From Basidiobolus meristosporus CBS 931.73 (Eukaryota; Fungi; Basidiobolomycota), in the NCBI GenBank assembly GCA_002104905.1, contig MCFE01000248.1, forward strand, positions 1-64,000: a stretch of DNA of 64,000 nucleotides. The letters run 5' to 3'. Of this stretch, positions 23,359 through 57,700 are shown in pieces. The notes under the pieces were generated by a model. The model was not told the origin of the DNA. It searched no databases and saw nothing but the letters and a program-made list of their open reading frames with translations. The position numbers and the translations under genes are program-made. Each line of letters begins with the position of its first letter. Positions within the stretch are counted from its first letter, which is position 1.

Positions 23359-26300
23359 TGTTATGATCTGCTGCTTGAATGTTTAAGTTAGATCAGCTTT
23401 TGGTGAAATCAATTAGTTATATGTTTAGCTTATCAGTATATCTGTGTTATCTATCAAATCAGTAGCATGAGTCAGCAAATGAATCTGCAGATCCTTATCA
23501 GACAGAAATAGATATACTAGGTAGGATCTTATTTGGCAATGATGATGCAATCAAATGAGTCATCAGCCACAGCCTACATTAGGAAATACAATTATTTAGC
23601 AGTTGAACTGGCAAAATGCTTATAAGGAGCTGCTGGAATCTCAATAAAGATCAGTTCAAGTTTTAGTGAATACAATACTAGCTAAACTCCCTATTCCTCT
23701 ACAATTCTTATACCAAGACTTGTAACATTGGTGGCAACAATAACCAGAAACATCCATCCTGAAGAAAGAAGAAGCCTCCCTCAAGATGTCCAAAAATTAA
23801 GTATGAAAGAATGCTATGCAACAAATCCTGGCGTAGTAGCAACAAGGAATGACTACCATGGCCCAAAGCCAGCAAAACCCTGTCAAGAGCAACTTTAGTG
23901 TGAAGGTCAACTGGAGCCAGGGTAAAGTCAATAAAACCTGGGAACTTGGCTCTTCCAGATTGAAGAAGCTTTCAAGGCTAAAGGAATTGTTCTAGAAAGC
24001 AAGTTACATTATGCAGCCTCTTACCTGGCAGATGCAGCTTTACAGTGGTACCACAACAAGATCAGGTCAGCAACCATGATGGGATGCTTTACAATCTCTA
24101 CCTGGGATGAGTTTGTGTTGCAAATTCAGGATGCCTTGGAGCCCCTACACCAACAGACACTACTAAGAAGAAAGTTGAAGACACTTAGACAGAAATGAAT
24201 GATCCCAGAGTACATCTGTGAATATAGATGTCTACTGGGGCAAATTGAAAGAATGGACCCTCTGGATCCAATTGAATACCTTATTGATGGGTTGAAAGAA
24301 AGAACTTGTAAGGAAGTGAATTATCAAAGACCTCAGACTACTGAAGAAGCCATCAAGATTGCCATTGACTATGACTCAGCTATGTTTGGAGTTGCAAAGC
24401 CCACAATGACTAATCAGAGAGGCTACAATAACTATGAAAGAAGACAATCAGAAGCGGTGCCAATGTGAATAAACACTATTCAGAAGAATCCTACCTCAGA
24501 AGAATATAAGAAGAGAGGACTTTGCTTCAATTGCCACCAGCAGGGACATATTGCAAAGTACTGCCCTCTGAGAGGAAATGGACACCAGCCGTCACAAACC
24601 TTTAGCCATATTGAGGCCATGGAGCATAGTAACATGTAGGATTGACTTGAAAAAGACTCAGAACTCACCTTCCATATGGCAGAAGAATACCTATCCCTGA
24701 TGACATCAAACTCAGGAAAGCTAATATCCTTGAATGGAGTAATCAATGGAGTACCTGCCAAGATTATGATTGACTCAGGAGCATAGCATGAGTACATGTA
24801 AGAGCAATTTTCTTTGAAAGCTGAAATCAACTTAGAACCCACCAAATCAACTTCAGTCTCAACAGCTGATGGGAACTCTCACATAATCAGCTGTGTTACT
24901 CAGCCAGTAAGGTTGAAGATTAATGACTATGAACAAGATCTACAGGCCTATATATCTGGGAACTGCAAATTTGACCTTGTACTTGGGAAAACCTGGCAAT
25001 TTTGTTGTAATCCATCAATCAACTGGAGAACCCATGCTACCCAGATCCAGAAGGACAACAAGACCTATGAGCTATTACCTGCTAGACTGGATTTTAACTT
25101 AATAAATCCAGTGTGTGTGAAACAAGTGAACTTATCAAGACACAGTTCTGTAGAGCACTAAGAAAAGGCACCCAGATGTTCCTCATGGCAGTATTACAGG
25201 AGGATTCATGTACTCCAGTACCCTAGAAGGTCCAGACTCTTTTGAAGGAGTATTGAGATGTATTTCCAGAAGAGCTTGTAAGCCTACTACCAGTCAGAGA
25301 TGTGGATCATGCCATCAAAACAGGAGAGTGCCCTCTAGTAAGTAAGACACCCTACAGAATGAGTCCATTGGAGTTGGAGGAGATGAAGAGACAAATAGAT
25401 CAGTTACTGGAGCAAGGATATATCAGACGCAGCAAGTCACCTTGGGGAGCACCAGTTCTTTTTGTGAAGTAGAAGGATGGACCACTTAGGATGTGTATTG
25501 ACTGCAGAGCCCTCAACTCAGTAACTGTAAAGAATAAGTAACCCCATACCTTGGATTGATGAGCTCTTGGACCAACTCAATGGAGCCACAATTTTTAGCA
25601 AGATTGACCTCATGTCAGCATACAACCAAATTAGGTTGAAGCCAGAAGACATCCATAGGACAGCATTCAGAACCAGATATGAACATTACAAGTACTTAGT
25701 CATGAGTTTTGGCCTCACCAATGCCCCTGCAACATTCATGACCCTGATGCTGACTGTCTTCCAGGAGTACTTAGACAAGTTTGTAATAATCTACCTAGAT
25801 GATATATTGATATACAGCAAGACAGAAGAGGATCACTTGGTGCACATTGATAAGGTCTTGAAGAAGCTAAGAGAGAACAAGCTTTATGGCAAGCTACCCA
25901 AGTGTGAATTCTTCAAGGAACACATTGAATATCTGGGACACATAGTGACTAGCACAGGAGTAAACTTAGACCCTAAGAAGGTTAAAGTTATCAAAAATCT
26001 GAAGCAGCCCCATAGTATATCAGAGCTCAGATCATTCCTTGAAATGGTTTCCTATTGTTGGAGATTTGTCAAGTTCTTTGCAAGTATTGCAGCCCCTTTA
26101 ACTGATATCCTCAAGAAAGACAATACCTACAAGTGGGACATATCTTGTGAAACTGCCTTCCAGATGCTCAAGAATGAACTTGCTAAGCTGCCAAGCTTAA
26201 GAGTACCTGACTTCAGAAAAGAGTTTACTCTGTGCACAGATGCTTCAGACTATGCAATTGGTAGAGTGTTGAGTCAAGAACACAACGGAAAGGACTACAC

Positions 26301-28059
26301 CATTGCCTTTGAATCCAAGAAACTGAACTCAGCAGAACAAAACTATCCAGTGCATGAGAAGGAAATGCTTGCTATAATACACTGTTTGAAGACATGGAGA
26401 TGCTATATTGAAGGAGTCAAACGCACTGTAAAGACTGATCATGCCTCCCTCAAGTATGTATTTACTCAGAAGGTACTCTCTAGAAGAATGCCAAGATGGA
26501 GTGAATACATTCAGCAATTTGACTTAGATATTATCTACTGCCCTGGAAAAAACAACACAGTTGCTGACACCTTATCAAGATTAGATCAAGTTGCACTACT
26601 CACCTTGGTGCATGAATCAGATTGGCCTAGCCTATTACCAAAGTACTTGGAGGACCAAGCCATTCATAATGAGGTGGATGAAGATATGAAGAAGATAATC
26701 TGGGATGAAGCCAGCAAATTTGTAGTACAGGATGAAACACTCTACCAAATTGTTGATGGAAGCCCTATTGCCTATTGCCTATATCCCTTATGTTTCTTGC
26801 CTGGATTTAATACATAAGCTACACAATGAACATAGATATCTTGGAATTGAAGGAACCTATAGCCTTGTGAAAGCCTCAGCATGGTGGCCCAGAATGAAAC
26901 ATGACATTGAGAAGCTAGTGAAAGCATGCCCAAAATGCCAAATCAACAAAGGCCAACCACAGAGAATTGCTGAACTCCTTCCCTTGGAGCCTGTAAGACC
27001 ATTTGAAAGATGGGGAATTGACTTTATTGGAAGACTGCCAACTACCAGGAAATGTAACTGTTGGATCTTAGTAGCAATTGACCATGTCACTAAATGGCCA
27101 GTGGCTAAAGCTGTACCTATAGCCAGTGAACAAGAAGTTGCAAGTTTCATATACAATGAGATTCTTATGAAGTTTGGATGCCCTGTAGAGATTCTATCTG
27201 ATAGAGGTGCAAACTGTATGGCAAAGACATTGGAAGCTTACCTGGAAATGCAGCAGATCAAGCACTTGAAAACCTCAGCATATCACTGAACAGTTTAATG
27301 GATTATTTTGAAAATGCTGACCAAGTTTGCAGATGGAATTGTCAGTAGGTGGGATGAGTATATAGACCAAGCACTCTTTGCATGCTGAGTCAGAGTACAC
27401 AACACCACCCAGCATTTGCCATTTTACTTAGTGTATGGATGGGTACCAAGGATTCCAGGAAATCTCACACAACCAAGCTTACAGACACCTTAGAAGGTGA
27501 ACTCAGTCTGCCCAGTAGACACCAGCAACTGGAACAAAGATGTCAAGAGGCACAGACCAAAGTATCTCAAAGTGCAGAGATGATGAAGCAGAGATTTGAT
27601 AAGCCTATAGCACCAGAAGCATTGACAGTTGGGAACTTGGTATTGCTAAGAAACAACACTCAGAAGAAGTTTGAGCCACAATGAACAGGACCATACCAGA
27701 TCATCAGAGAATGTACATTTGCAACTTACCAATTAGTGGACAAGCAAGGCAATATCCTGGAAGACTTAGTGCACAGGGACAGACTGAAGCTTGCAAGAGT
27801 TGCGGATAGTACTGAACCATCAAGATATTAGTATCACAAGAAAAGAGATTCAGGAGAACCCTCTCACTTTAGCAGGTGAGAATGTTATGATCTGCTGCTT
27901 GAATGTTTAAGTTAGATAAGCTTTTATTCAAATCAATCAGTTATATGTTTAGGCTATCAGTATATTAGTATTATCTATCAAATCAGTGGCATTAGTCAGC
28001 AAATGAATCAGCAGATCCTTATCTGACAGAAATAGATATATTAGGTAGGATCTTATTGG
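23359..28059 (+). mobile_element. Ty3/Gypsy element, decayed, 3' LTR truncated
   Basis: 5' LTR at 23359-23727 followed by TGGTGGCA PBS-like sequence. Gag with CCHC, protease (IDSGA), RT (YLDD), RNase H (TDASDYAIG) and integrase (ERWGIDFIG) in Gypsy order. The 3' LTR starts at 27883 and breaks at ~28059. Confidence 0.9.
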
Positions 28060-31000
28060 AGCAGGGAATGAAGTGAGTCTTTATTGTGAGTCTATCTGCC
28101 ACTACTAACACTGGAATGAATTGGTTGGATTCTGTAAGGCTGGCTATGAAGCCCATTGAAATTAACTTCCAATACTGGTCAGGAATTGGTCAGGGTTGAA
28201 GAAGCCCATATGGCTGGTGATTGGCAGATTTAACATGATTACATGAATCACAGCATTGGAGGTATTCCTTGACAAGGGATATTGTCTTGGGCCACCAGAA
28301 GTCTCTCTTGATTGCATTCATGGTTCTGGCAGTACCAAAATGTCCTGCAGCCATTGAATCATGGCAAGAATTGATGATATCTAACTGGGAATCAAGGTCT
28401 GGGACAAACAGCTGGTGCTGGTAATGGATGATGTCATAGGATAGATGTATGTGCTGGAGGTTTGGAAACTTGGTTGGTGGGTCAGTGGGAGACTTGAGGT
28501 TTTTCTTGATTGTTGCTGCAGTGGAGTTGGTGGCTTGGCTGGTCTTGACTTCCTCTAGGAGTAAATGAGCTATAGTACTGGAGGACATGGCTGCAAGGAG
28601 CTCAAGATGTCTTTTGTTGAGTACAGGGTTTGTCATTTGCCAACAGGCATCATCCCATTCTTCAAGGGAATACTCCACCATTCTGGACAGGGCATCAAGT
28701 TTTCCTTGTTTCACACCTGGTCAATAGGTGATGACAAAGTCAAAGCTAGACAGGAAGAGGGACTATCTGGCTTGTCTCCTGTTTAGTACTCATCAGATGG
28801 TAAAGTACTTAAGGTTCTTGTGGTCACAGAAGATCTTTATTGCTTGGGCTGCACCATCAAGGTAGTGTCTCCAATGTTCAAAGGCAACTGTGATTGCAAG
28901 TAATTCCTTGTCATGAATATCATAGTTTACTTCAGCTGGAGTAAACTTTGGAGAGTAGAATGCAATAGGGTGTAGCTCATTCATGTCATCATACTGCAAA
29001 AGGATTCCACCAAGGGCAAATTCAGAGGCATTTGTTTCTATGATGCAAGGTCTCTCAAGGTCAGGGTGGGCAAGCAGTGAGGCATTCAAGAAGGATTTCA
29101 TGATATACTCAAAGGACTCAGACTGTTCCTTATTCCAGGCAAAGGGCAGATTTTTCTGGGTGAGCTTTGTCAAGGGAGTGACTCTCTTAGAGTAGTTGGC
29201 AATGAAGCTACAATAGAAACTGGCCAGTTCAAGGAAAGATTGCACTTCTCTTACAGAACAGGGAGCTTTCCAGGATTGGATTGCTTCTACTTTCATGATG
29301 TCCATTTTTGTTCCATTTGAGCTTAAAAGATAACCTAGGAACTCAACTTCTTTCTGGTCAAACTCACATCTTTCCAGTTTGGCATAGAGGTCAGCAGTGT
29401 CAAGCTTGATCATGACTTTCTTCACATGGGAATTATGCTCTTCTTGAGTCTTGGAGTAGATCAGGATATCATCAAGGTAGATAACCACAAATTGGTCAAA
29501 GTACTCACAGAATATGTTATTCATCAGGTGTTGAAAGACAGCTGGGGCATTGTTGAGGCCAAATGGCATAAACTTATACTCAGAGTGACCATATCTTGTT
29601 CTGAAGGCAGCTTTCCATTCATTGCAAACTTAATCCTGACAAGGTTATAAGTTCCTCTGAGGTCAGTTTTAGTATATACTTTGACAGCAGAGAGTTGATC
29701 CAACAGGGTGCTTATCAGGGGCCAAGGGTCCCAGTTCTTGATTGTGATCTTATTCAGTACACTATAGTCTACACACATTCTTAGCGTACCATCCTTTTTT
29801 TTGACAAAGTGAATTGGGGCACCAGCTGAGGACTTGGAGTGCTGTATAAGTCCTTTCTGGATGTTTTCTTTTATATAACAATGGAGTTCTCTCAGCTTAG
29901 CCTGCAGAAGGTTGTAGATAGGACCAAAAGGTGGGGTTTTTCCATCTTCAAGGTCAATGGGACAATCATAGGGTCTATGTGCTGGGAGTAGTTCTGCTTT
30001 CTTCTTATCAAAGACATGGGCAAACTCTTGGTACTTAGCATGTACTCCATTGGTGGGGGTACCGGTAGTGATGATGGGCTCCTGGGTCTGGGGTAGCTTT
30101 GGAAGAGCTATTTCTTCACCTGAGAAATCTGGTGCTTTCATGGAGCTGACCTGATGGACTCTGGGAAATGTCAGAATTTTGGTCTTCCAGTTGATAGCTG
30201 GGTTATGTTGATTAAGCCATGAGCTTCCATGGACTATGGGGTAGTGGGTAGAGTTGATGATGTTGAAGGCTATTGTCTTGTGGTGACCAATACTGGACAG
30301 CTGGAGTAGACATGTCTTATAGGTAATTGCACAAAAGGAGAGGGATCTTCCATCAATAACTTCTACTTGGACAGGATAGGATTTTAGGATAGTGGGGATT
30401 TTGTGCTTCTGGACAAAGGACTGGTCAATGAAACCAGAGGAAGCACTGGAATCTATGAGGGCAAGGCTGATAAGTATGTTGGAGCTTCTGTTTCTTCTGA
30501 AAAAGGCAATTATCACATTGGATTACTTGATGTATAGCTTCACCCAAAGTATTTCAGTCAGGGAGTGTGAGAAGTAGGTCACTGACTTCATCATTGAGTC
30601 CATCTTGAAACTGCCAAATTAGGGCAGCATCACCCCATAGGATCAAGTTACTGGCTAGTAGATGGAATTCAGAAGCTTACACAGATGCAGGTCTGCTTCC
30701 TTGCTTCAAGCTCTTAATCTTGTTGGCAGCAGTTTTAGCTTGGTCAATATTGCCAAATGTAAGCTCCATTTCTGTGGGGAAGGCGTGGTAGTCACTGAGT
30801 AGTGGGGAGTTGGCTTCTACCAAAGGGGAGAACCATTCTGGGCAGTTCCAATAAACAGGTTTGAGATATATCCAACTTTTGCCTTATCAGTTGGGAACTG
30901 ATTGGATTGTAGCAACAAGTGGTGCTTGACTATGTTGATGAAACCTCAGAACTCATTATGGGAGCCACTGAACTTGGTAGTGGATGTGATCTTGGGATCA

Positions 31001-32609: not shown

Positions 32610-34750
32610 TGACTTGTTCCATTGTACCGTGCCAGGGCATGCAGCACAATCTGCAGTTGTAAAGAACAATTGGCTGCAATATTCAAGCTACCAGAAGGCA
32701 GGATAGTTCTTGGACAATTTTGCACTAGGTGGGACAATCTTGCACACTATGGCACAATCTGACACAATGAGGTTGCCACGGATGTTTGCGCCAACTTGTA
32801 ATGTTTGCATCATGTGCACAATTGGATACCACTATTATGGCAGGTAAAATCCGGTATTTGGATATGTTTCTTTAATGTGAATGGAAATAAATGTGTATCA
32901 CACTATAAACTACACTGATACTTACCATGTTGGTTACCATCATTCCAATTGGATGGTATCTCAATGGTTAATTGGTCCAAAAGTATCCTGAAGCTGGCAG
33001 CCCCCAATTGGCATATTGACTACTAAAAAAGCTACCTGATTTGCCATCAAATATCCCATTTTGCCCATTGAGCAAGTAAATTCCTGATTGTAGTGATTGG
33101 ACAAGGTGTCATAGCTAGCACGCAAGCAATTGGGTAGGTGCAAAACAGATTTAATAGCTGCACTGGTATTATAGATGATGTATATATATGCAGGGTTTTT
33201 ATTTATAGGGGTTCTGTCTCAAATATGAGACAACCTTGATATTACTTATATCAAAAATTTGATGATCACTGATTTGTGATGGCTTGATTCAGATTGCAAA
33301 AAAAAAGGGTTGTTGGGATCATTACAAATAATAGCAATCCAAAGCAATCGCATCATCTTCTCCTGGGTTTTTTTCTCACAGGGATTACTACTGAAGCATT
33401 TGGTAGTGACTCACTTTGCACACCTATACTACTTCCTGGCTGACTATAATCTTGGCTACTTGTGTATTTGTAGTCAGTATTTTGCCTCCTAGTTGATGAG
33501 TGCAATGCTGCAGCTTGGCCATGCTGAATTGCTCCGACTGAACAGACTGAACCGGCCTGGAGTGCCATGCGCTGACGCGTTCTTTTATTGGCAAGGGCTC
33601 TGGTGGTTAAGGCACTTCATGTTTGTCATCATCAGTCAGTTCACCAGAAGTAACTTGCTGATGGTCAGGCAAAATGGCACACACAGGCGCGCCTTGACAT
33701 GTTGAGATGGCCCTTGGCTGAGTTTGATGTGATGCTGCATGTTGATGCAACTTGGTCCGCTCCAATGGACTTGTGTCTAAATGGGCAGTTTGGCGAGTTC
33801 TGGTAGTTTTGCTCTGAAGCGCGCGCATTGACCCAACATGCGTTGACTTGACGTGGGGTGCTCTGGTAAAGGGTGTTGGCATAGTCTGGACTGACAAGTG
33901 CCGGCGTGCTGTGGTTGCAAGAGATGGTAAGGAATCTAGCAAGGCGTGCTGGCGCAATCTGGACAATGTTGCTTGCGGTCTGTATTCTTCCTCCTGAAGC
34001 TCACCATCTAATTCTTCAAGGTATTCACTTACCCTCTGTCTGATACTTTGAAGCTGTTGCCTGGATGAGTCCTGTGTATATTGCTCTGGGAAGCCACTTA
34101 GCTCTACTGATATATCACGTAGTAAATTAGTCATTTGAGGCAAAAACTCATTCAAAATCTCTTTGGTTCCCAAAGTTGAGGCACAAACAGACATGTCCGG
34201 CCTGTACTGTGCAAATTGCACACCAAATTGTTCCTGCGTGGCTTCTTCATCAAATTCCCTCACTCTCAGCTCATTCTTGATTTCAATACTTGTCTTGTTA
34301 TATATCTTCTTACATACATTGGCTGGCATCTTGATGTAGAACTCATGCCACAGCTTTCTACTCAAATTCTTCCATCTTTGTCAACTCTCTAAGGTATCTT
34401 GTTCTGCTAGATTAATCAGTAATGCCCAAATATCTGCATGAAGGCTCATCATAGACACTTGGGCCATACTAAAGTCATTTGGCAAGAACTCAAATGGATC
34501 CAACATTGACTTTTCCGGTCCTGACCGCGCTTGTGAGCTGGGGGATGGGTTTTGTCTGGGTTGTATTAAAGATGAGTAGAGGCTTGGTATGGGGACCATA
34601 GCAACAGATTTGGATACTTATACAGCAGTATATTGGCATCAACCTGGTCTTATATGAAATATATATGGAAACTAATGTGATTGTTGAATTCTCCATATTT
34701 TATGCTTGATGCATCTTGGATTGCATTGACACAGATCAGATCATATCAAT
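32610..34750 (-). mobile_element. PHIS transposon right-arm copy (terminus plus ORF2 pseudogene)
   Basis: Reverse complement of ~44675-46814. Terminus (T)GACTTGTTCC at 32610. ORF pieces 34490-34696, 33607-34365 and 33353-33568 match ORF2. Confidence 0.88.
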
Positions 34751-34771
34751 CAAAGATAGGCCAAAGTGTTA

Positions 34772-35657
34772 ATGGTGAGCCTTCATACAGATACTTGGGA
34801 ACTACTCATTAATCTAGCAGAACTAGATACCTCAGAGAGTCAACAAAGATGGAAGAATTTGAGTAGAAAGCAGTGACATGAGTTCTACATCAAGATGCCA
34901 GCAGATGTATGTAAGAAGGTATATAACAAGACAAGTATTGAAATCAAGAATGAGCTGAGAGTGAGGGAATTTGATGAGGAAGCCATACAGGAACAGTTTT
35001 GCATGCATTTGCACAGTATGGGCCAGATGCATCCTTTCATGGCTCAACTTTGGGAACCAAATAGATTTTGAATGAGTTTTTGCCTCAAATGACTAATGTA
35101 TTACATGATATATTACTAGAGCCAAGTGGCTTCCAAGAGCAATATACACAGGACTCATCCAGGCAACAGTTCCAAAGTATCAGAGAGAGGGTTAGTGAAT
35201 ACCTTGAAGAATCAGATGGTGAGCTTCAGGAGGAAGAATACAGACCGCAAGCAGAGGAAGAATACAGACTACAAGCAACAACTTCTAGATTGCACCAACA
35301 CTCCTTACTGGATTCCTTACCATCCCTTGCAACTTCAGTGTGCCAGCACACATCAGTCCAAACTACACCAACACCTTTACAAGAGTGCCCTGCATTGAGT
35401 CAACATGTGTGCTTCAGAGCAAAACCACCATAACTTGCCCAGCTGCTCATTTAGACACAAGTCCATTAGAGCAGGCCAAGTTGCATCTACAAGCAGCATC
35501 AAATTGAACTCAGCCAAGGGCCATGCCAGCGCATCAAGTTGCACCTGTGCATGTCATTACACCTGACCATCAGCAAGTTTCTTCTGGTAAACTGACTGAA
35601 GATGGCCCTCATGAAGAGCCTCCAGCACTAGAGCCTTTGGCAAGTAAAAGAACATGT
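34772..35657 (+). pseudogene. Third ORF2 fragment of the PHIS element, cut by a Gag-Pro LTR
   Basis: Colinear with 44970-45850. Carries an in-frame 24-bp duplication (EEEYRPQA/EEEYRLQA). Abuts the LTR at 35658. Confidence 0.85.
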
Positions 35658-37977
35658 TGTGGTGGTGTAGAGGTACTCCTGGGTGAAGCAACACAACTCA
35701 AGGTGTGGGAGGTGTCTAATGGGTGCTATAACCTCTATGTCTAAACTGCTGGTGTCTATGTCAATATGTCACTATGATAAAGCTCCTGCTTTTCTAGCTT
35801 CCCAGATGCTCCAAGTATCTTCAAAGGACTCTGTGTGTCTTGTGCACTTCCCTAAAAAGCTCCTTGATGGTAAGTCTGAGGTGTAAATGTTAAAGGTAGG
35901 TGCAGTGATCAACTGCTAATCAATAAGGGGAAAGTGTTACTGATAGAAGGGATGATTTATTGATGAGGGATTGCCTTCCCTTAAGTACTTTTTCTGATTG
36001 CCAAGTGATTACCAATGACAAGGTTCTAGAAGATTCCAGGCATCAGTGGATTCTTGATGACATCATTATGAGCTAAAAATATGCCAAGAATGTCCTGGAA
36101 GGTTCTAAAAGGCATAGCACATCCAACCAGTTAGGGATCAGTAGTCTGAAACCTGTGCAACATAGAGATACCATATATGGTATATATATGGTAAGGATGG
36201 TAACACAGACTTAGGTCATGTGTCACTGGTGCTGATGCCAGTACTTGCCAAATGTTGATACATAGATAGATCACAAAGCTGAATAACATCAGGGATAACT
36301 AATGTTAGTAGCTAATCAGGGTAAACCTCATATGAGGATAATACTAATAATATGGGCAAAAGAGAATTGGGATAATACTGATAAAATAAGATATGGATTA
36401 GGACATTATAATAGCTATATGAATAAAATTGTCTGTGGGAGGTATGTGGACCCTCCCACATCCACACCCCACTTGATCTAAGAAGTTCTCTGAAACTTTT
36501 TAGCTAACCACTGAAAGTATGGAGAACAAAGTGCTCTCTTAGTAATCCTCAATGAAGCCACCTGTCTTTTCTTGGGATAGAAATCTACATGATGTCATTG
36601 ATTGGATATTGCTTGGGTCCACACCACAGAAGGTAGCTGTTAGTCCTGGGCTCTCTGAGTATATAGTATACCATGCTGAACCATCTGGGTAGTTCACTGC
36701 AGTTGCTCTTGCTTTCACCTCCCATGGTCTTCTAAGAAGTAATTCCAAGTTAGCCTTTGCACAAATGAAGACTAGGGTCTCATGGAGTATTCTTTTAATG
36801 ATGAGAGGGAAGCTGTGGATAATTCCTAAAAGCTTTGATTTCCCTGAGTTGGCATCCTTCATGCTCTAATTGATATTGGTGTCTATGAATAATAGGTCCT
36901 TGTACGGTAGTTGGTTCCAAGCCTCCAAAGGCATCACACATATCTCAGATCCTCTGTCTATATGACATAGGATTTCTTGATTATGCACAGTCCCAGTATT
37001 TGTTGCAGTTGCCACTGAGTAGTAGTGTTTTTGGCTTTGACCCTGCTTACTGATATCTTGGTTTCCTTGAACTGTCTTTACCTGGTTGCCTTGGGTTGCT
37101 TCAATTGGATGCTTTCTTACTCTGATGTGCTGATCCAGAGTCTTTCCTACTGAGGGTGATACACTGAGTAGCTCTCCAACCTTATTTGGTATGTTGCTAC
37201 CTAGTGTATGACTGGTCAAAGCCTCTCTGGTACCATTTTGCTTGACTCTAAGCTGCATGTGGTAGTAGTTGGCCTTGGCAGACTCATGCAAGATTAATGG
37301 GGGTGATGCTTTCTGATCAATCACAACTACTTGCTCACACCTTTGTACTTTTGTTGATGGGCCTGGATAAGCCATCTTTTCAGGAAGATGTCTCTTTGAA
37401 GCATAACTTGAGGCTATATGATCTTGGGCCTCTCTGGGGTACTCATAGTCAAAGTTCAGATCTTCAGCTGGATCCAAGTAGTTAGGATCTTCTTCTTCAT
37501 GGAGGTACACCTTTCTTGTATGAGAGGTGACTTGCTTGTAGTGAACTCTTACTCCTCCTTGTCCAAATGCTGTGGATAATTTGTCACCATGCTTACTGAC
37601 TATATATCCCTGAGGACTGTACAGGACATCACCTGTGGATAGTAATGACTGAAGCACTTGGCAATTTCACTTGAAATGGTTGGCAGAGTCACACCATATA
37701 CATGTATATTTAATCTCTTTCTCTACTGACTTCTGTCCATATGCTTGGCTGGCCAGTAGCACAGAAAGTTTCTCTAGTTGCTGTGTCAGCTCCTGAATTT
37801 GAGTATTCTGCTTTCTGGATTACGTAAGTCTTGGCTATCTTTGTTTTGTGCTGGGCTCAAAAGAAGCTTTCCTATTGGTGAGGTTTCTTCAGGGGCAAGT
37901 AGAATCTGCGTAGCTAACTGAAATGCAAGCAGTGAACTCATAGCTCCCACAGTAGGATCACTTTCAATCCTTGTAAC
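35658..37977 (-). mobile_element. Older, 5'-truncated copy of the Gag-protease-only LTR element
   Basis: 3' LTR at 35658-36460 with adjacent PPT. ORF pieces 36866-37657 and 36539-36862 match the 618-aa ORF and end at the same position (GGFIEDY*). Confidence 0.9.
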
Positions 37978-38888: not shown

Positions 38889-39222
38889 TGTTGTAAAAGT
38901 AAGTAATTCCACCTAAATATTCACCAAACTTAGTCACTTAGATCATAACCCTCAAATCCTAGAGAATACTGACCAAATTTCCTGTTGGCATCCTGGAGAA
39001 TACTGACCAAATTCCTGGTTGGAATTTACTTAGAATAATAAACTTGTTCTGTTGAATAGTGCCATATAGTGCCAGCCTGTTTATGGTGCCGGATCAATCT
39101 GGCACTCTACAGCACTATCTGGCACTATAATTTCTACCATGATGCCAGTGGTATGATACAGTTACTGGTAATTCTACTCAATCTTATTTATGTTGCTCAG
39201 AATAATGCTTTACTTGCTTTAT

Positions 39223-40107
39223 TTACTCTTCATAATGCTCCAGACACATTTCTCTCAGTGGATGTCTTCTTGTATGAGCATACTGTGCATTAATAAGTAT
39301 CTTAACTATTTTACCTATTCTGCTGTCTTCAACAGTATATGACTTTCCTCTGTATTTACCTGCCAATATGCTGAATCTCTTCAGATATCCAAATGTGTGC
39401 TCTACCCTCACTCTGAAATGATTAAATATCTCATTGTAGAGCTTCTGCTTCCTGCTAAGCACACCATTTCTTAGCTTCCTATAAGCTGTAATACATCCTA
39501 ATCTCTGACAATCCTCTCCTATATAGGCTAAGTCTGCCATACATTTCTCCCCTCTACTGAATTCAGGATGATTCTCTACCCAGAGTGCTTTGTCATGCCT
39601 ACTTCCAGCAAATGGCCCACTAAACCAGATGATGTTACCTTCACTGTCAGACAGTGCTTGAAACTTCACACAGTGTGCCTTGTACTTGTCAGAATAAAAG
39701 TGCCTCTGCCCTCTAGAAGGTCTGTTAATCCTGACTGGGAAGGTATCCAAAATACTCCTTATCTGGAACATGTTGCTGAACACTCTGGGATATGGAACTA
39801 TATTGGAGCTTCTGAACCTAGTATTCCAAGCTTGCTCTAAGTCACTCATACCCTCTGCAAGGTGGTTCTCCATTGCTGTCAGATGGGAATGAATGCTTCT
39901 TGGACTTTTGTTGCCATGGATGGTGGGATGAAACCTTGTAGGGCAATAGTTCTTGTAATGGCAGAGAAGCTTAACAAGGGATCCCCTTGAGTAGATTGGG
40001 GTTGATGGTCCACAGTACTTGGAATAGATCTCCTCTAGTGTGTCAAAAGGAAATCCAGTGGTAGTGATGGGATTGATGAGAAAAGACCATTCAGATGAGT
40101 AAGTCAT
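39223..40107 (-). CDS. DDE transposase (DDE_Tnp_4 / IS5-like PHIS type), 294 aa, open frame
   Basis: Motifs ILDTFPVRINRP, YSDKYKAHCVKFQ, SGPFAGSRHD, MADLAYIG and RVRVEHTFGYLKRF supply the D-D-E triad. YSDK differs from YSGK in the sister relic, so activity is uncertain. Confidence 0.85.
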   Translation of the reverse strand: MTYSSEWSFLINPITTTGFPFDTLEEIYSKYCGPSTPIYSRGSLVKLLCHYKNYCPTRFHPTIHGNKSPRSIHSHLTAMENHLAEGMSDLEQAWNTRFRSSNIVPYPRVFSNMFQIRSILDTFPVRINRPSRGQRHFYSDKYKAHCVKFQALSDSEGNIIWFSGPFAGSRHDKALWVENHPEFSRGEKCMADLAYIGEDCQRLGCITAYRKLRNGVLSRKQKLYNEIFNHFRVRVEHTFGYLKRFSILAGKYRGKSYTVEDSRIGKIVKILINAQYAHTRRHPLREMCLEHYEE

Positions 40108-40139
40108 ATTAAAATTGGTGGATGATTGTATGGAGGCGG

Positions 40140-40943
40140 TGTGGTAGGGTAAACATACCTCCCACAGACAAGTTTATTCATATAGTCATTATGATATACT
40201 TATCCATATTTTATCTTATCAGCATTATCCCATTCTTCTTTTGCCCATATTATCAGTATTATCCCCATATGATGTTTACCCTGATTAGTTATTAGCATTA
40301 GTTATCCCAGATGTTATTCAGCTTTGTGATCAGTAGATGTATCTATATAAGGCAAGTACCCGCGTCAGTACCCGTGACACATGACCTAGGTCTGTGTTAC
40401 CATCCCTACCAATTCAATACCATATATGGTATTTCTATGTTGCACAGGTTTCAGACTACTGATTCCTGATTGGTTGAGAGTGCTGTGCCTTTTAGAACCT
40501 TCCAGGACATTCTTGGCATATTTTTAGCTCATAGTGATGTCATCAAGAATTCCACTGATACCTAGCATCTTCTAGAACCTTGTCATTAGTAATCACTTGG
40601 CAATCAGGAAAAGTATTTAAGGGAAAGCAATCCCTCATCAATAAATCATCCCTTCTATCAGTAACACTTCTTCCTTATTGATTAGCAGTTGATCACTGCA
40701 CCTGCCTTCAACAGTACATCTCAGACCTGCCATCAAGGAGCTTTTCAGGGTAGTGCACAAGACACACAGAGGCCTTTGGAGACACTTGGAGCACCTAGGA
40801 AGCTAGAGAAGCAGGAGCTTTTACCATAGTAACATATTGACAAAGACACCAGCAGTTTAGACACAGAGGTTATTGCACCCATCAGACACCTCACACACCT
40901 TGAGTTGTGTAGCTTCTCCCAGGAGTACCTCTACACCACCACA
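40140..40943 (+). repeat. 5' LTR
   Basis: TGTGGTAGG...ACCACCACA with TATATAA at 40344-40350. Confidence 0.95.
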
Positions 40944-40947
40944 TATT

Positions 40948-40964
40948 TGGCACCCAACGTGGGG
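40948..40964 (+). promoter_or_regulatory. Primer-binding site, tRNA-Lys type
   Basis: TGGCACCCAACGTGGGG against the known tRNA-Lys1,2 PBS TGGCGCCCAACGTGGGG: one mismatch, at a CpG. Confidence 0.8.
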
Positions 40965-41017
40965 GGTTTGACTGAACTGCCCCTAGAAGACTTAAGAAAG
41001 AACAAATTATCAAGACC

Positions 41018-42874
41018 ATGGATCTACCTTTACCAGGAATGCAAGGAACTCCTTTCTTTGATGGAACCAAAGTTAAAGCTTTCATCAAGAGGTGGGAGCT
41101 TTTCTGCAGAGCCCACAAAATACCTGAGGCCATTATGGCTGAAGAGATGCCCCCCTACAGCACTGATGAGATCATGCTCTCATTATATGAAAGACATGAT
41201 CTGCTGACAAATTGGACCCTCTTGAAGAGCTACTTGATTGATGAATATGGAGAGAGACAAGTTGACTACACACTTCAAGACTTGGAGAACTTTGCTTATA
41301 GCAAGTTTAAGCTGCTACCATTGAAAGAATACTTGAGTGGCCTTGAGCAAATTGGAGAGTCACTGAAAGCCCAAGGCATTATCACTGATCTGACTTTATC
41401 TGCCTATCTGCTCAGAGCACTACCAGAAGGCCTGGTGAGAAGGATTGAAAACAATCCTACTGTGAAAGCTATGAGTTCACTGCCTGCATTTCAGTTAGCT
41501 AAGCAGATTCTACTTGCCCCTGAAGAAACCTCACCAATCAGAAAGCTTCTTTCAAGCCCAGAACAAAACCAAGATAGCCAAGACATACTTAATCCCAGCA
41601 ATCAAAGCACTCAAATTCAGGAGCTGACACAGCAACTAGAGAAACTCACTTTGCTACTTGCCAGCAAAGCATATGGTCAGAAGCCAGTAGAGAAAGAAGT
41701 CAAATATACATGCATGTGGTGTGACTCTGCCAACCATTCCAAGAGAAATTGCCAAGAGCTTCAGTCATTACTATCCACAGGTGATGTTCTATATAGTCCT
41801 CAGGGATACATAGTCAGTAAGCATGGTGACAAATTATCCACAGCATTTGGACAAGGAGGAATGAGAGTTCACTACAAGCAAGTCACCTCTCAAACAAGAA
41901 AGGTTCACCTCCATGAAGAAGAAGATCCTGACTACTTTGATCCAGCTGAAGTTCTGAACTTTGACTATGAGGACCCCAGAGAGGCCCAAGATCATATAGC
42001 TTCAATTTATGCTTCAAAGAGACACCATCCTGAAAAAATGGCTAATCCAGGCCCAGCAACAAAAGTACCAAGATGTGAGCCAGAAGTTGTGATTGAGAAG
42101 AAAGCATCACCCCCATTAATTTTACAAGAGTCTGCCAAGGCCAACAACTACCACATGCAGCCTAGAGTCAAGCAAAATGGTACCCCAGAGGCTCTGACAA
42201 GTCATATACTAGGAAGCAACATATCAATCAAGGTTGGAGAGCTACTCAATGTATCACCATCTGTAAGAAAGACTCTGGATGAGCATATCAGAATAAGAAA
42301 GCATCCAATTGAAGCAACTCAAGGCAACCAGGTCAGGACAGTTCAAGGAAGCAAAGATATTAGTAAGCTGCATCAAAGCCAGAAACACTACTACTCAGTG
42401 GCAACTGCAACAACTACAGGAACTGTGCATAATCAAGAAATCCTATGTCATATAGACAGTGGATCTGAGATATGTGTGATGCCTTTGGAGGCTTGGAAAC
42501 AACTACCATGCAAAGACCTATTGCCCATAGACACCAATATCAATTGGAGCATGAAGGATGCCAACTCAGGGCAATCAAAGCTTTTAGGAATTATTCACAG
42601 CTTCCCTCTCATCATTGAAGGAATACCCCATGAGATCCCAGTATTCATTTGTGCAAAGGCTAACTTTGAATTACTTCTTGGAAGACCATGGGAAGTAAAA
42701 GCAAGAGCAACTGCAGTGAACTACCCAGATGGTTCAGCATGGTATACTATATACTCAGAGAGCCCAGGACTAACAGCAACCTTCTGTGGTGTGGACTCAA
42801 ACAATATCCGATCAATGACATCATGTAGATTTCTATCTCAAGAAAGGACAGGTGGCTTCATTGAGGAAGACTGA
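41018..42874 (+). CDS. Gag-aspartic protease polyprotein, 618 aa, intact
   Basis: N-terminal PFFDG..V..FI..WE capsid-like motif, zinc knuckle CMWCDSANHSKRNC, protease HIDSGSEICVM...LLLGRPW. The stop is followed ~65 bp later by the PPT. Confidence 0.9.
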   Translation: MDLPLPGMQGTPFFDGTKVKAFIKRWELFCRAHKIPEAIMAEEMPPYSTDEIMLSLYERHDLLTNWTLLKSYLIDEYGERQVDYTLQDLENFAYSKFKLLPLKEYLSGLEQIGESLKAQGIITDLTLSAYLLRALPEGLVRRIENNPTVKAMSSLPAFQLAKQILLAPEETSPIRKLLSSPEQNQDSQDILNPSNQSTQIQELTQQLEKLTLLLASKAYGQKPVEKEVKYTCMWCDSANHSKRNCQELQSLLSTGDVLYSPQGYIVSKHGDKLSTAFGQGGMRVHYKQVTSQTRKVHLHEEEDPDYFDPAEVLNFDYEDPREAQDHIASIYASKRHHPEKMANPGPATKVPRCEPEVVIEKKASPPLILQESAKANNYHMQPRVKQNGTPEALTSHILGSNISIKVGELLNVSPSVRKTLDEHIRIRKHPIEATQGNQVRTVQGSKDISKLHQSQKHYYSVATATTTGTVHNQEILCHIDSGSEICVMPLEAWKQLPCKDLLPIDTNINWSMKDANSGQSKLLGIIHSFPLIIEGIPHEIPVFICAKANFELLLGRPWEVKARATAVNYPDGSAWYTIYSESPGLTATFCGVDSNNIRSMTSCRFLSQERTGGFIEED

Positions 42875-42952
42875 GAGAGCACTTTGTTCTCCAAACTTAC
42901 AGTGGTTAGCTAAAAAGTTCCCTGAAACTTTTTAGCTCAAGTGGGGGGTGGA

Positions 42953-43756
42953 TGTGGTAGGGTAAACATACCTCCCACAGACAAGTTTATTCATATAGTC
43001 ATTATGATATACTTATCCATATTTTATCTTATCAGTATTATCCCATTCTTCTTTTGCCCATATTATCAGTATTATCCCCATATGATGTTTACCCTGATTA
43101 GTTATTAGCATTAGTTATCCCAGATGTTATTCAGCTTTGTGATCAGTAGATGTATCTATATAAGGCAAGTACCCGCGTCAGTACCCGTGACACATGACCT
43201 AGGTCTGTGTTACCATCCCTACCAATTCAATACCATATATGGTATTTCTATGTTGCACAGGTTTCAGACTACTGATTCCTGATTGGTTGAGAGTGCTGTG
43301 CCTTTTAGAACCTTCCAGGACATTCTTGGCATATTTTTAGCTCATAGTGATGTCATCAAGAATTCCACTGATACCTAGCATCTTCTAGAACCTTGTCATT
43401 AGTAATCACTTGGCAATCAGGAAAAGTATTTAAGGGAAAGCAATCCCTCATCAATAAATCATCCCTTCTATCAGTAACACTTCTTCCTTATTGATTAGCA
43501 GTTGATCACTGCACCTGCCTTCAACAGTACATCTCAGACCTGCCATCAAGGAGCTTTTCAGGGTAGTGCACAAGACACACAGAGGCCTTTGGAGACACTT
43601 GGAGCACCTAGGAAGCTAGAGAAGCAGGAGCTTTTACCATAGTAACATATTGACAAAGACACCAGCAGTTTAGACACAGAGGTTATTGCACCCATCAGAC
43701 ACCTCACACACCTTGAGTTGTGTAGCTTCTCTCAGGAGTACCTCTACACCACCACA
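42953..43756 (+). repeat. 3' LTR
   Basis: Near-identical to the 5' LTR; preceded by PPT aagtggggggtgga. Confidence 0.95.
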
Positions 43757-43877
43757 GCGGTTTGAATCAATTCAGCGCATTCTGAGTTATTTATCAGATT
43801 TTTAATGTATTATGGTTAAATATCCATCAATTGCCATGTGTCCCATCACTATGTCACAAAAATCATTGGCAAACAAT

Positions 43878-44611
43878 AGACTTGTTCTGTTGGATAGTGC
43901 CACATTGAGCCATGAGTGCCAAATGATGCCATAGTGTGCCAAAGAGGCCAAGTGAGCCTATACTTGGCCACAGAGTGTGAAACATATATCTGCATCTTCA
44001 TGCAAAGTAGCCCCTGTGTTTCACCTATGATGCTGGAGAAAATCCATTTTTTGATTCTTTTTTTGTGCATCAATATTGTGCAGGATGTGTAAGAGCACCA
44101 AAGGATTGAAGATATACATCTGGTACTCTATACCCATGGCACTCTGAATCTAGCTCCAGTGGCTTGTACCATGTCACAAAAATGCATGGCACTATCTTGG
44201 TCCACTGGTACTATCTGGCACTATATTTAAATATTAGCCCTAGAGTAAGATGAATACAAAGCACTTATAGTGTTAGAGAGTACCAGTGGACCAAGATAGT
44301 GCCATGCATTTTTGTGACATAATACAAGGCACTGGAGCTAGATTCAGAGTGCAATGGGTATTAAGTACCAGATGTATATCTTCAATCCTTTTGTGCACTT
44401 ACACATCCTTTACAACATTGACCTAAAAGAAAAGGTCAAAAAATGGATTCTCTCCACCACAATGAGTGAAACACAGGGGCTGCTCTGCATGGAGATGCAG
44501 AGCTGTGCTGCACACTTTGTGGCCAAGTGTAGGCTCACTTGGCCTCCCTGGCACACTATGGCATCATTTGGCACTCATGGCTCAATGTGGACTATCCAAC
44601 GGAACAAGTAT
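43878..44611. mobile_element. Foldback MITE with ~330-bp inverted arms and PHIS-family termini
   Basis: 43878-~44210 is the reverse complement of ~44280-44611, with a ~70-bp spacer. Termini AGACTTGTTCTGTTGG / CCAACGGAACAAGTAT; TSD AAT at 43875-77 and 44612-14. Confidence 0.88.
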
Positions 44612-44727
44612 AATGCCTTGGTACTTTTATTGATGCTTTAATCATAGGTCTATAATCAAATAGGAAATCTGCAATTGATGTGATCTGATCTGTGTCAAAG
44701 CAATCCAAGATGCATCATGCATAAAAT

Positions 44728-46071
44728 ATGGAAAATTCAACAATCACATTAGTTTTCATATATATTTCATATAAGACCAGGTTGATTCCAATATACTGCT
44801 GTATAAGTATCCAAATCTGTTGCTATGGACCCATACCAAGCCTCAACTCATCTTTAGTACAACCCAGACAAAACCCATCCCCCAGCTCACAAGCGCGGTC
44901 CAAACCGGAAAAGTCAATGTTGGATCCATTTGAGTTCTTGCCAAATGATTTTAGTATGGCCCAAGTGTCTATGATGAGCCTTCATACAGATATTTGGGCA
45001 CTACTGATTAATCTAATAGTACTAGATACCTCAGAGAGTTGACAAAGATGGAAGAATTTGAGTAGAAAGCTGTGGCATGAGTTCTACCTCAAGATGCCAG
45101 CCAATGCATGTAGGAAGATATATAACAAGACAAGTATTGATATCAAGAATGAGCTGAGAGTGAGGGGATTTGACAAAGAAGCTGTGCGGGAACAATTTTG
45201 CACGCAATTTGCACAGTACATGCCAGACGTGTCCGTTTGTGCCTCAACTTTGGGAACCAAAGAGATTTTGAATGAGTTTTTGCCTCAAATGACTAATGTA
45301 CTACGTGATATATTAGTAGAGCTAAGTGGCTTCCAAGAGCAATATACACAGGACTCATCCAGGCAACAGCTCCAAAGTATCAGACAGAGGGTAAGTGAAT
45401 ACCTTGAGGTATCAGATAGTGAGCTTCAGGAGGAAGAATACAGACCGCAAGCAACATTGTCCAGATTGTGTCAGCATGCCTCACTGGATTCCCTACCATC
45501 TCTTGCAACCACAGCGTGCTGGCCCACATCAGTCCAGACCATGCCAACACCCTTTACCAGAACACCCCGCATCAAGTTAATGTGCATTGAGTCAACGCAC
45601 ACACTTCAGAGCAAAACTACAAGAACTTGCCAAACTGCTCATTTAGACACAAGTCCATTGGAGCGGACCAAGTTGCATCAACATGCAGCATCACATTGAA
45701 CTCAGCCAAGGGCCATCTGAACGTGTCAAGGTGTGCCTGCACGTGCCATTTTGCCTGACCATCAGCAAGTTACTTCTGGTGAACTGACTGATGATGACCA
45801 ACATGAAGTGCCTCAACCACCGGAGCCCTTAGCAAGTAAAGGAACGCATCAGCACGTGGCACTGCAGGCTGGTTTAGTTGGTTCAGTCAGAGCAATTCAG
45901 CACGGCCAAGCTGCAGCATTGCACTCATCAACTAGGAGGCAAAATACTGACTACAAATACACAAGTAGCCAAGATGATAGTCAGCCAGAAAGTAGTATAG
46001 GTGTGCAAAGTGAGTCACTACCAAATGCTTCAGTAGTAGTCCCTGTGAGAAAAAAACCCAGGAGAAGATGA
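44728..46071 (+). pseudogene. PHIS accessory ORF2 (~384-447 aa reconstructed): F-box-like motif, helical core, S/T/Q-rich tail, basic RKKPRRR end
   Basis: Three track ORFs (44728, 45058, 45733) share one frame and are separated only by TGA at 45040 and 45697. Sister copies have CAA at these sites, implying ancestral CGA. Confidence 0.7.
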
Positions 46072-47032
46072 TACAATCGCTTTGAATTGCTCACATTTGT
46101 AATGATCCCAACAACCCATTTTTTTTGCAATCCAAATCAAGCCATTGCAAATCAGTGATCATCAAATTTTTGATGTAAGTAATATCAAGGTTGTCTCACA
46201 TTTGAGACAGAACCCCTATAAATAAACACCCTGCATATATATACTTCATCTGTAATACCAGTGCAGCTATTAGATCTGTTTTGCACCTCCCCAATTGCTT
46301 GCATGCTAGCTATGACACCTTGTCCAATCACTACAATCAGGGATTTACTTGCTCAATGGGCAAAATGGGATATTTGATGGCAAATCAGGTAGCTTTTTTA
46401 GTAGTCAATAAGCCAATTGGGCGCTGCCAGCTTCAGGATACTTTTGGACCAATTAACCACTGAGATACTGTCCAATTAGAGTGAGGGTAACCAAAATGGT
46501 AAGTATCAGTGTAGTTTGTAGTGTGATATGTTTTTATTTCCATTTACATTAAAGAAACATATCCAAATACCAGATTTTACCTGCCATAATAGCGGTATCT
46601 GATTGCGCACGTGATGCAAACATTACAAGTTGGCGCAAATATCCGTGCCAACCTCATCATGTCAGATTGTGCCATAGTGTGCAAGATTGTCCCACATGGT
46701 GCAAAATTGTCCAAGAACAATCCTGCTTTCTGGTAGTTATAATATTGCGCCCAATTGTTCTTTACAACCGCGGATTGCGCCGCATGCCCTGGTACGGTAC
46801 AATGGAACAAGTCTATTTACCCAGAACATAAAATTAGATAAGTTGTCCAAACAGCCCCAAACTTTGAACACATGTTACTGGGAGCCTCCTTAGCCTATTC
46901 TATGAGTCTGTGATGCCAAGACCATGTCAAAGTATAAATGCTACTTTTACATTTGATAAATCATTAAGTGAAAACCACACAATCTACTTGTGCCCTCAAA
47001 TCACATCTAACATCTCCAAGACTCTTACAACA

Positions 47033-54700: not shown

Positions 54701-57700
54701 TTTCTCATACATGCAGGCTTCACAGTGCTCCAAATTAGCTGAGGGATCAATTTTTACTCCGCAAATTAGCTGATCTTTGATTGTTTTGTGCAAATAATCA
54801 TAATTGATGTGCCCAAAACTCCTGTGCCAGAGCATTGGTGTTTCCTCATTTAAGCTACTTATATTGGCTTCCAGATATGATGAAATATAAGTCAGCTTGT
54901 ATAGACTCTGATTTCTGATACCCAAAGCAATATGGGCTCTTTTTGATCAGTGATCCTGCATCCAGAGTTGTCAAAGCTGAAGCTGAGTCCCTCTGCTGTG
55001 GCCTTACTCACAGATAGTAGGTTCTTGGCTATTTCAGGTACATAGAGTACTTCTTTAAAGGTTAATATATGGCTTCCTTCACTGCTTCTAAGGTTTAATT
55101 GGATAGTTCCTTCTCCCACAGCATCAAGTGTTCTATTGCCACCCATGAAAACCTTCTTAATTGGAATTTCTTGATATTGGGTAAGAAGTTCCTTTTAGTG
55201 TGTAGAGTGATGCAATGCTCCAGAGTCCATGTACCACATCTGAGAATCCTTGTTTGTGGTCATATTTAGTGCAGATATGAATAGTCTATCTTCAGTTGTT
55301 GCAGCATATCCATATTCAGACTTCTTTTGCTGATTATCTTTCTTTTCAAGACACCGGTCTGATGTGTGTCCTTTCCTTTTGCAGTAGTTACAAAACAGGT
55401 TGCTGTTGCCTTTGTAGGGTCTTGGGCTCCTCCTTTGTTGCCTATCATTACTTATTAAAGCATTTTCTTTATCCTTCTTGTTGGTGCTTGATCTTCTTAG
55501 TTCATCATCCAGGAGCCTTCCTAATACATAATTTAAGGTCAAATCTTCAGTTCTGGACTCTAGAGCTGATACTGTTGTAAAAATTTGTATTTCCACCTAA
55601 ATACTCACCTAACTTAGTCACTTAGATCATTACCTTCATATCCTAGAGAATACTGACCAAATTCCTTGTTGGGATTTACTTAGAATATTTACCCAGAACA
55701 TGAAAATTAGATAAGTTGTCAAAACAGCCCCAAACAGCCCCAAACTTTGCACACATGCTCTTGGAACCTTCCTTAAGCTATACTATGTGTTTGTAATGCC
55801 AAGACCAGGTAAAAGCATAAATACTACTTTTACATTCAATAAATCATTAAGTGAAAACCACATAATCTACTTGTTCTCTCAATCACTTTCAATATTTCCA
55901 AGACTCTTACAACAGGTTATGAGCCCCAAGCTGTCACTCTCCGCAATGTCTACCACTGCTATTACTGGAATCTTTCCCTCTGCTGAAAAGTTGGATGGAT
56001 CTAAATACCAAGTGTGGAAGGTGAAGATGAAGATGCTGCTGCAAGAAAGAGTCTGTTAGGATATTTTCATGGGAGAAGAAGCTTTAGAGTACTAGAAGAA
56101 AGAACAAAGTGCCTTTAACTGCATTTGCCTTGATGTTAAGGACAAATTGCTGATTCAGTGCTCAAGAGTAAAAACAGCAAAGAATGCCTGGAAGGCATTA
56201 GAAGACACTTACCAGTCATGTTCAGCTGCTACAACAATCTATCCAAGACAAAAATTCTTTACTACAAAGATGCTGTCAGGAGAAGAAATAAAAAATCTAA
56301 TTAACAGAATTACCCTGCTGGTAGATGCGATGGAATCTGTTGGCGTACCAACTACTGATGAGGATGTGAAAGTTGCCATCCTGAATAGCCTGACAGACAA
56401 GTTTCAGGGCCATGTATCAGCCCTGGAGTCCAGAACTGAAGATTTGACCTTAAACTATGTATATGGAAGGCTCCTGGATGAAGAATTAAGAAAATCAAGT
56501 GCCAATAAGAAGGAAGAAGAAAATGCTTTAATAAGCAATGATAACCAACAAAGGAGGTACCCAAGACCCTATAAAGGCAACAGCAACCTGTTTTGCAACT
56601 ACAGCAAAAGGAAAGGACACACATCAGACTGGTGTCTTGAAAAGAAATATAATCAGCAAAAGAAGCCTGAATATGGAAATGCTGCAACAACTTAAGATAG
56701 ACTATTCATATTTGCACTAAATATGACCACAAAAAAGGATTCTCAGATGTGGAATATTGGCTCTGGAACATCTCAACACTCTACACACCAAAAAGAACTT
56801 TTTACCCAATATCAAGAAATTCCAATTAAGAAGGTTTTCATGGGTGACAATATAACACTTGATGCAGTGGAAGAAGGAACTATCCAAGTAAACCTAAGAA
56901 GCAGTGAAGGAAGCCATACACTGACCTTTAAAGAAGTACTCTATGTACCAGAAATAGCCAAGAACCTACTATCTGTAAGCAAGGCCACTGCAGAAGGACT
57001 CAGTTTCAGCTTTGACAATTCTGGATGCAAGATCACTGATCAAAATGGTGCCCATATTGCTTTGGGTATCAGAGATCAGAATTTATACAAGTTGACTTAT
57101 ATTCCATCATATTTGGAAGCCAATATAAGTAGCTTAAATGAAGAAATACCAATGCTCTGGCACAGGAGATTTGGGTACATCAATTTTGATTATTTGCGCA
57201 AAATGATCAAAGATCAGCTAATTTTGGGAGTAAAAATTGATCCCCCAGCTAATTTGGAGCACTGTGAAGCCTGCATATATGGGAAACAAGCCAGACAACC
57301 ATTCAAGAGCTCTAGGTTAATCAAAACTAAGAAAAAATTAGATCTAACTTGCTCAGATCTGTGTGGACCTATGCAAAATTTGTCCTTAGGCGGGATGAAG
57401 TATTTAATCACTTTTATTGATGATTATACAAGATACACATGGGTCTACTTCATGGAGAGAGAAGAAAAAGCTCTGTCTAAGTTCAGGGAGCTCAAAGCCA
57501 TGATGGAGAGAGAAACTGGTGAAAAAATCAAGAAAATATGCTCTGACAATGGTGGAGAATATACCTCAAAACTCTTCATCCACACCTGCAAAATTCATGG
57601 GATAAAGCACAAGACTACTATACCATACTCCCCACAGCAAAATGGAGTAGCAGAATGTGCTAACAGATCAATAATAATATGGCAAGATCTATGATCCATG

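Follow-up and report, generated by a model that had tools for sequence, protein, structure and literature searches.

Long terminal repeat (LTR) retrotransposons that retain Gag in the absence of pol have been described in plants in several forms. TR-GAG elements were defined as shorter than 4 kb, present in two or more copies and equipped with LTRs, a primer-binding site (PBS) and a polypurine tract (PPT), with similarity to Gag and without similarity to aspartic proteases (Chaparro et al., 2015, PMC4350172). Gag-protease-only derivatives of ATHILA account for 934 of 2,322 elements and are the commonest ATHILA type in most of the surveyed Brassicaceae (bioRxiv 10.64898/2026.03.20.713144), and 28 families with GAG and PROT domains only were reported in sugar beet (PMC13570524). 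In fungi, many successful LTR families were found by a survey to be without pol domains (PMC3248453). Here, we describe a complete LTR retrotransposon of 3617 bp in the fungus Basidiobolus meristosporus CBS 931.73, which occupies positions 40140-43756 of a 64,000-nucleotide stretch (assembly GCA_002104905.1, contig MCFE01000248.1, positions 1 to 64,000 of the forward strand; this whole stretch is called the window below) and encodes a single Gag-protease protein. An earlier note on the window, made from its letters alone, had singled this element out. In our view the element probably represents a non-autonomous lineage derived from Ty3/gypsy retrotransposons, whose sole gene is Gag (capsid plus CCHC nucleocapsid) fused to a retropepsin, and for which reverse transcriptase (RT), RNase H (RH) and integrase (IN) would be borrowed from a helper.

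Architecture of the intact element

Repeats were found by a direct-repeat scan and by self-BLAST of the 64-kb window. The two LTRs of the intact element, at 40140-40943 (5' LTR, + strand) and 42953-43756 (3' LTR, + strand), are both 804 bp long and 99.75% identical, with just two mismatches (C/T at 40223 and C/T at 40919). Their termini read TGTGG...CCACA, and TATATAA and AATAAA are present at 40344 and 40640, respectively. The same 4-mer, GCGG, stands on the left (40136-40139, + strand) and on the right (43757-43760, + strand) of the element as a target site duplication (TSD). The intact element was integrated very recently, with a TSD of 4 bp. Both the LTR pair with two differences and the GCGG duplication had been reported in the earlier note, and both are borne out by the coordinates and the alignment.

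The PBS, TGGCACCCAACGTGGGG, is located at 40948-40964 (+ strand), 4 nt past the end of the 5' LTR, and this is its only occurrence in the window, even when up to three mismatches are allowed. A PBS of this sort is, we take it, of the tRNA-Lys(1,2) type. Compared with a foamy-virus PBS quoted in the literature (PMC3386198), it differs at one of 17 bases (16/17 match); no tRNA gene was found in the window. With the PBS reported for the coelacanth endogenous foamy-like virus (PMC3386198) it agrees in every letter, and both are presumed to have converged on one tRNA-Lys 3' end. On the other side of the internal region, a spacer of 78 nt (42875-42952, + strand) ends in the PPT, AGTGGGGGGTGGA (42940-42952), which directly adjoins the 3' LTR. 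The tRNA-Lys PBS and the PPT of the earlier note could thus both be located, the former as a 17-mer of this type and the latter as a purine run. All the cis signals for reverse transcription and integration are present in the element, namely the LTRs with their TG...CA ends, a TATA box and poly(A) signal, the PBS and the PPT.

Between the LTRs there are only 74 nt that hold the PBS, an open reading frame (ORF) of 618 codons and the 78 nt that end in the PPT. Because the internal region is filled by these three parts, it leaves no room for RT, RNase H or integrase. Inside the element, none of the three was detected by similarity. The absence of these domains, as claimed before, therefore holds by similarity as well as by space.

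The ORF itself (41018-42874, + strand), taken from the ORF list, is intact and encodes 618 amino acids. Pfam yielded only sub-threshold matches to it (DUF4100 and Asp_protease), so structure prediction was needed. Two motifs can be recognized in the protein, a CX2CX4HX4C zinc knuckle at residues 232-245 (C232, C235, H240 and C245; 41711-41752, + strand) and a D-S-G at residues 480-482. The cysteines C232, C235 and C245 are near-invariant in two alignments of relatives, and D480, G482, G555 and P557 are near-invariant in an alignment of relatives. AlphaFold2 (AF2), run on alignments of relatives, gave confident models for residues 1-170, 230-290 and 455-600. The capsid region, residues 1-172 (41018-41533, + strand), was modeled as two lobes with a predicted local distance difference test score (pLDDT) mostly above 90, and structure alignment with VIA-align matched it to the Ty3 capsid 6r24 (Z 9.2, root-mean-square deviation 3.3 Å, 145/155 residues aligned) and to dArc1 6tap (Z 9.1); the capsids of PNMA2, PEG10 and copia were matched too. 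Helical folds reach middling Z scores easily, yet every top row in this comparison is a retroelement capsid matched over both lobes. The C-terminal domain (residues 455-600, including D480-S-G; 42380-42817, + strand) was matched by Foldseek to the retroviral-type protease domain (RVP) of Ddi1 and to HIV-1 protease, with E values from 8e-8 to 5e-4 and target TM scores of 0.7-0.78. The ORF is thus modeled as a Ty3/Arc-like capsid, followed by a CCHC knuckle and a D-S-G retropepsin, and the single intact Gag-CCHC-protease ORF that had been noticed from the letters is confirmed by its motifs and predicted folds.

A host-domesticated gag-protease gene of the PEG10/Arc kind could likewise be expected to have an intact ORF and a capsid fold resembling those of Arc, PNMA2 and PEG10. 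Such domestication is scarcely credible here, since intact LTRs, PBS, PPT and TSD surround the ORF, the whole element is nested in a DNA transposon, and a decayed paralogue is found at a distance of 3 kb.

The older copy and the age of the short form

The decayed paralogue is a 5'-truncated copy of the element at 35658-37972 (- strand), which is 90.4% identical to element positions 1301-3617. It consists of an ORF remnant (36539-37972), the spacer and PPT (down to 36461) and an LTR (35658-36460), all on the minus strand. The earlier note had placed this copy at 35658-37977 and had ascribed to it the same ORF end and spacer; the copy is real and these shared features stand, while its end is corrected to 37972. 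Only single-base indels separate the two copies, and their alignment continues unbroken from the ORF end across the spacer and the PPT to the far end of the LTR. The stop position, the 78-nt spacer, the PPT and the start of the LTR are therefore common to both, with the stop at the same codon as TGA in one copy and TAA in the other. In its remaining 1.43 kb of ORF, the older copy has accumulated two in-frame stops and one frameshift. Its 5' side is cut off against a Copia-like fragment, its LTR end is followed by ACAT... and not by GCGG, and its orientation is opposite to that of the young copy. Different flanks and opposite orientation, together with the same junction, indicate two separate insertions that inherited one pol-less architecture.

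Nested and rearranged repeats are densely packed in the window, and in such a setting a one-off internal deletion might have been spread by segmental duplication, or the near-identity of the LTRs might be an artifact of assembly collapse. Either event is very improbable as the source of the two copies. Their flanks differ and their orientations are opposite, a perfect TSD of its own encloses the young copy, and the LTRs of the young copy differ at two sites and were therefore not merged. The last point also answers the possibility of a collapse that had been raised when the element was first noticed.

The LTR distance is 0.113 between the copies and 0.0025 within the young pair, a difference of about 45-fold, so the pol-less form is about 45 times older than the young insertion. 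It predates a divergence of about 11% and has transposed again very recently. Since a copy diverged by about 10% has the identical pol-less junction, the short form is what gets copied, and the data support the view that it persists as a lineage and did not arise by a recent accident. The earlier claim that this architecture has replicated as such, and does not represent a one-off deletion, is upheld by these two copies, which are about 10% diverged, stand at different sites and share the identical junction of protease (PR) end, spacer, PPT and LTR.

As the chief rival reading, identical junctions could also arise if both copies were recurrent by-products of an autonomous parent with the same LTRs, formed either from a spliced subgenomic Gag-PR RNA that keeps the PBS and PPT or by template-switch deletion at a hotspot. 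Such a parent would account for the shared junction and also for selection on Gag-PR, and the single-ORF elements BARE1 and copia are known to splice out pol sequence, 2.9 kb of it in copia, to obtain a Gag-only RNA (PMC3735527). This explanation is nevertheless quite unlikely: DNA copies of the spliced BARE RNA were not found in the genome (PMC3735527), and no autonomous copy with the LTR, PBS or Gag of the element is present in the 64 kb.

Ancestry, selection and the helper question

An exhaustive HMMER search with the ORF against 1.84 billion representative proteins (E <= 0.001) returned 659 relatives, the best of which are 24-30% identical to it over the N-terminal part of Ty3/gypsy polyproteins. 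The top named relatives are from Smittium culicis, S. simulii and Furculomyces boomerangus, fungi of the Zoopagomycota, which is an indirect sign of a fungal host. The protein P0005 was aligned to residues 5-599 of the ORF and then runs into RT and RNase H, and P0009 and P0014 align to Gag-PR and continue into RT, RNase H and integrase, the last of which is present, among the listed relatives, in these two only. The order PR-RT-RH-IN is seen in these full-length relatives, whereas the element itself has PR only. Because its relatives continue from Gag-PR into RT-RH(-IN), the ORF corresponds to the Gag-PR front of a single-ORF Ty3/gypsy polyprotein. The closest sequence relatives are the Gag-Pol proteins of Smittium culicis and Furculomyces boomerangus (P0002, P0004 and P0005; 23-29% identical to the ORF), which are collinear with the element in the capsid, the CCHC knuckle, a DUF4100-like stretch and the protease; unlike the element, P0002 and P0005 go on into RT-RNase H and P0004 goes on into an RT stretch. 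Four further Smittium relatives (P0001, P0003, P0006 and P0007) end at or just past the protease and have no RT domain; these may be pol-less kin within the Harpellales, or else gene models that were cut short.

A dN/dS test, which had been suggested in the earlier note, was carried out on the 472 codons shared by the two copies. With the NG86 method, dN was 0.073, dS was 0.162 and dN/dS was 0.45 (bootstrap interval 0.31-0.67). The test was repeated with a mutation spectrum drawn from the LTR and spacer, and non-synonymous and synonymous changes were then 0.71 and 1.08 of expectation, a ratio of about 0.65 (one-sided binomial p=0.017). Since one of the pair is a dead copy that has drifted neutrally since its insertion, the low ratio implies real constraint in the active lineage, and the reduced non-synonymous change fits a Gag-PR gene that is in use.

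These values bear on the possibility that the lineage propagates while its Gag-PR ORF is dispensable, the element being mobilized wholly in trans like LARD and TRIM elements and the young ORF being open through youth only. The fast decay of the older copy (the two stops and one frameshift described above) and the moderate size of the spectrum-corrected signal speak for it. We regard it as unlikely, though worth weighing, because the 618-codon frame is fully open after about 11% lineage divergence, the catalytic and zinc-binding residues are intact, and non-synonymous change falls short of the rates for synonymous and for non-coding change.

For a lineage that uses its own Gag-PR, the following cycle can be proposed. 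Transcription from the LTR promoter would yield a genomic RNA, and the Gag-PR translated from it would assemble particles and cleave itself. The RNA of the element would be packaged together with RT-RH-IN from an autonomous Ty3/gypsy helper, whose Gag-Pol may co-assemble with the Gag of the element or may share its packaging signals and integrase end signals. Purifying selection on Gag-PR points to preferential copying of those elements that provide capsid and protease themselves.

The helper is probably the sister family represented by a solo LTR of 1059 bp at 471-1529 (+ strand), which has its own TSD, CCAT (467-470 and 1530-1533), and an empty-site paralogue near 8958. Over its core at 616-983, a stretch bounded by the TATA box and the poly(A) signal, it shares 75% identity with the young LTR, and its ends, TGTAGTGAGG...CCCTACCACA, are homologous to the ends of the young LTR, TGTGGTAGGG...CACCACCACA. 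The homologous ends and the similar core mark this solo LTR as a member of a sister family, with a TSD of the same length (4 bp), and make it the best pointer in the window, as a possible marker, to the helper lineage. A distant LTR had been placed at about 471-1107 before; a related LTR is indeed there, and its extent is revised to 471-1529, as a solo LTR with its own TSD. No internal region of the sister family was found in the window. A weaker LTR-like piece is located at 5389-5849 on the minus strand.

Two other Ty3/gypsy pol remnants in the window, at 25450-27816 (+ strand) and 28232-29922 (- strand), were rejected as evident helpers, as they have no detectable similarity to the element in Gag-PR, LTR or PBS. 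The former is the RT-RH-IN part of a Ty3/gypsy element at 23359-28057, whose LTRs are short (at least 175 nt) and share 91% identity. The latter is a remnant of PR-RT-RH that adjoins it in inverted orientation, and neither is related to the Gag-PR family.

Several points weigh against the proposed helper-dependent lineage. Similarity and PBS searches agree with the earlier note that no helper with the LTR, PBS or Gag of the element is present in the 64-kb window. A word search with the 618-aa ORF (E <= 0.001) gave no match, a protein scan of metagenomes was blank, and a pattern scan of metagenomes for the LTR ends plus the PBS gave no match either; the best protein matches are only 24-30% identical. 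The transposon proteins of this genome seem not to be represented in the collection used for the word search. Only two copies could be compared, of which the older is without its 5' half, and the selection signal is moderate and comes from this one pair. The constraint, moreover, might date from an autonomous parent or stem from recombination with one.

The dependence could also be mutual. In a split, two-component Ty3/gypsy system, Gag-PR elements would give capsid and protease and pol-bearing copies would give RT-RH-IN, each depending on the other as in a multipartite virus. Such an arrangement is distinctly improbable on present evidence. If it were true, mutual dependence would take the place of one-sided parasitism, and extra Gag-PR could be favored because it provides an excess of capsid where single-ORF elements translate Gag and Pol at 1:1.

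Genomic setting and comparison with known systems

The young copy lies 30 bp upstream of a transposase ORF (DDE_Tnp_4; 39223-40107, - strand) of a PIF/Harbinger-type DNA transposon at 39038-46813. A search with this transposase yielded only a match of 61%. The transposon is in turn nested in another repeat, of which empty-site paralogues are present at 55651-55781 and 59950-60070. No empty-site paralogue spanning the young insertion site was found in the window. A partial, inverted-plus-direct copy of the right part of the PIF/Harbinger transposon, at 32611-35653, adjoins the older Gag-PR copy. Each Gag-PR copy is thus in or next to a PIF/Harbinger copy, and both lie in one DNA-transposon family. 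Within the DNA transposon, a 740-nt stretch at 43874-44615 matches its own reverse complement at 85% and forms a long internal palindrome.

The repeats of the window are extremely poor in CpG. The observed/expected ratio of CpG is 0.10 window-wide and falls to 0.01 for the intact ORF, which has a single CpG in 1857 nt; a PPR gene at the window end (62904-63953), for which a search gave only plant-like matches of 25-34%, has a CpG ratio of 0.83 and 52% GC. This pattern of depletion fits long-term cytosine-methylation decay confined to transposons.

As a compact and apparently active element, with 3.6 kb, one ORF and all the cis signals, it could suit studies of the benefit that making capsid and protease brings to a non-autonomous retroelement, and could serve as a practical marker of recent transposition in Basidiobolus meristosporus.

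Among the known systems, TR-GAGs are similar in many respects, as the element is 3617 bp long, has LTRs, PBS and PPT, a single ORF without RT, RH or IN, two copies and a young insertion. It differs from them in having a complete retropepsin, and TR-GAGs, as described, are confined to plants. Because of the complete retropepsin, the element falls outside the TR-GAGs as strictly defined. The earlier description of a fungal analogue of TR-GAG is thus apt for size, cis signals, Gag ORF and copies, while the protease breaks the strict definition. The internal region holds an intact 618-aa ORF, in contrast to LARD and TRIM elements, whose internal region is non-coding. BARE2 of barley, which relies on its relative BARE1 (PMC3735527), is likewise a non-autonomous LTR element with a related autonomous partner and packaging in trans, and is otherwise the mirror image: it has kept pol and lost Gag, whereas the element keeps Gag-PR and is without pol.

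The novelty implied in the earlier note was overstated, as Gag-protease-only lineages have already been published in plants. With these the element shares the features of their class: Gag and PR are kept, RT-RH-IN is absent, the cis signals are intact, and the short form has been amplified, with two copies in the window. The ATHILA derivatives resemble it in their Ty3/gypsy origin, in the retention of Gag and PR, in the loss of RT-RH-IN as a block and in a recently active short form; they differ in that they belong to plant hosts, are about 8.8 kb long with extra non-coding sequence or an extra ORF and have known autonomous partners, whereas the element is 3.6 kb long and fungal. The sugar beet families likewise have GAG and PROT domains only, and many of them are without a traceable autonomous partner; they are of plants and their domains are often decayed, whereas the frame of the element is open, with reduced non-synonymous change. 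A literature search found no description of a lineage with Gag-PR only in fungi, an absence that is not proof. The comparison therefore supports the view that the kind is known from plants and that the element in Basidiobolus meristosporus is a fungal case of a Gag-protease-only lineage.

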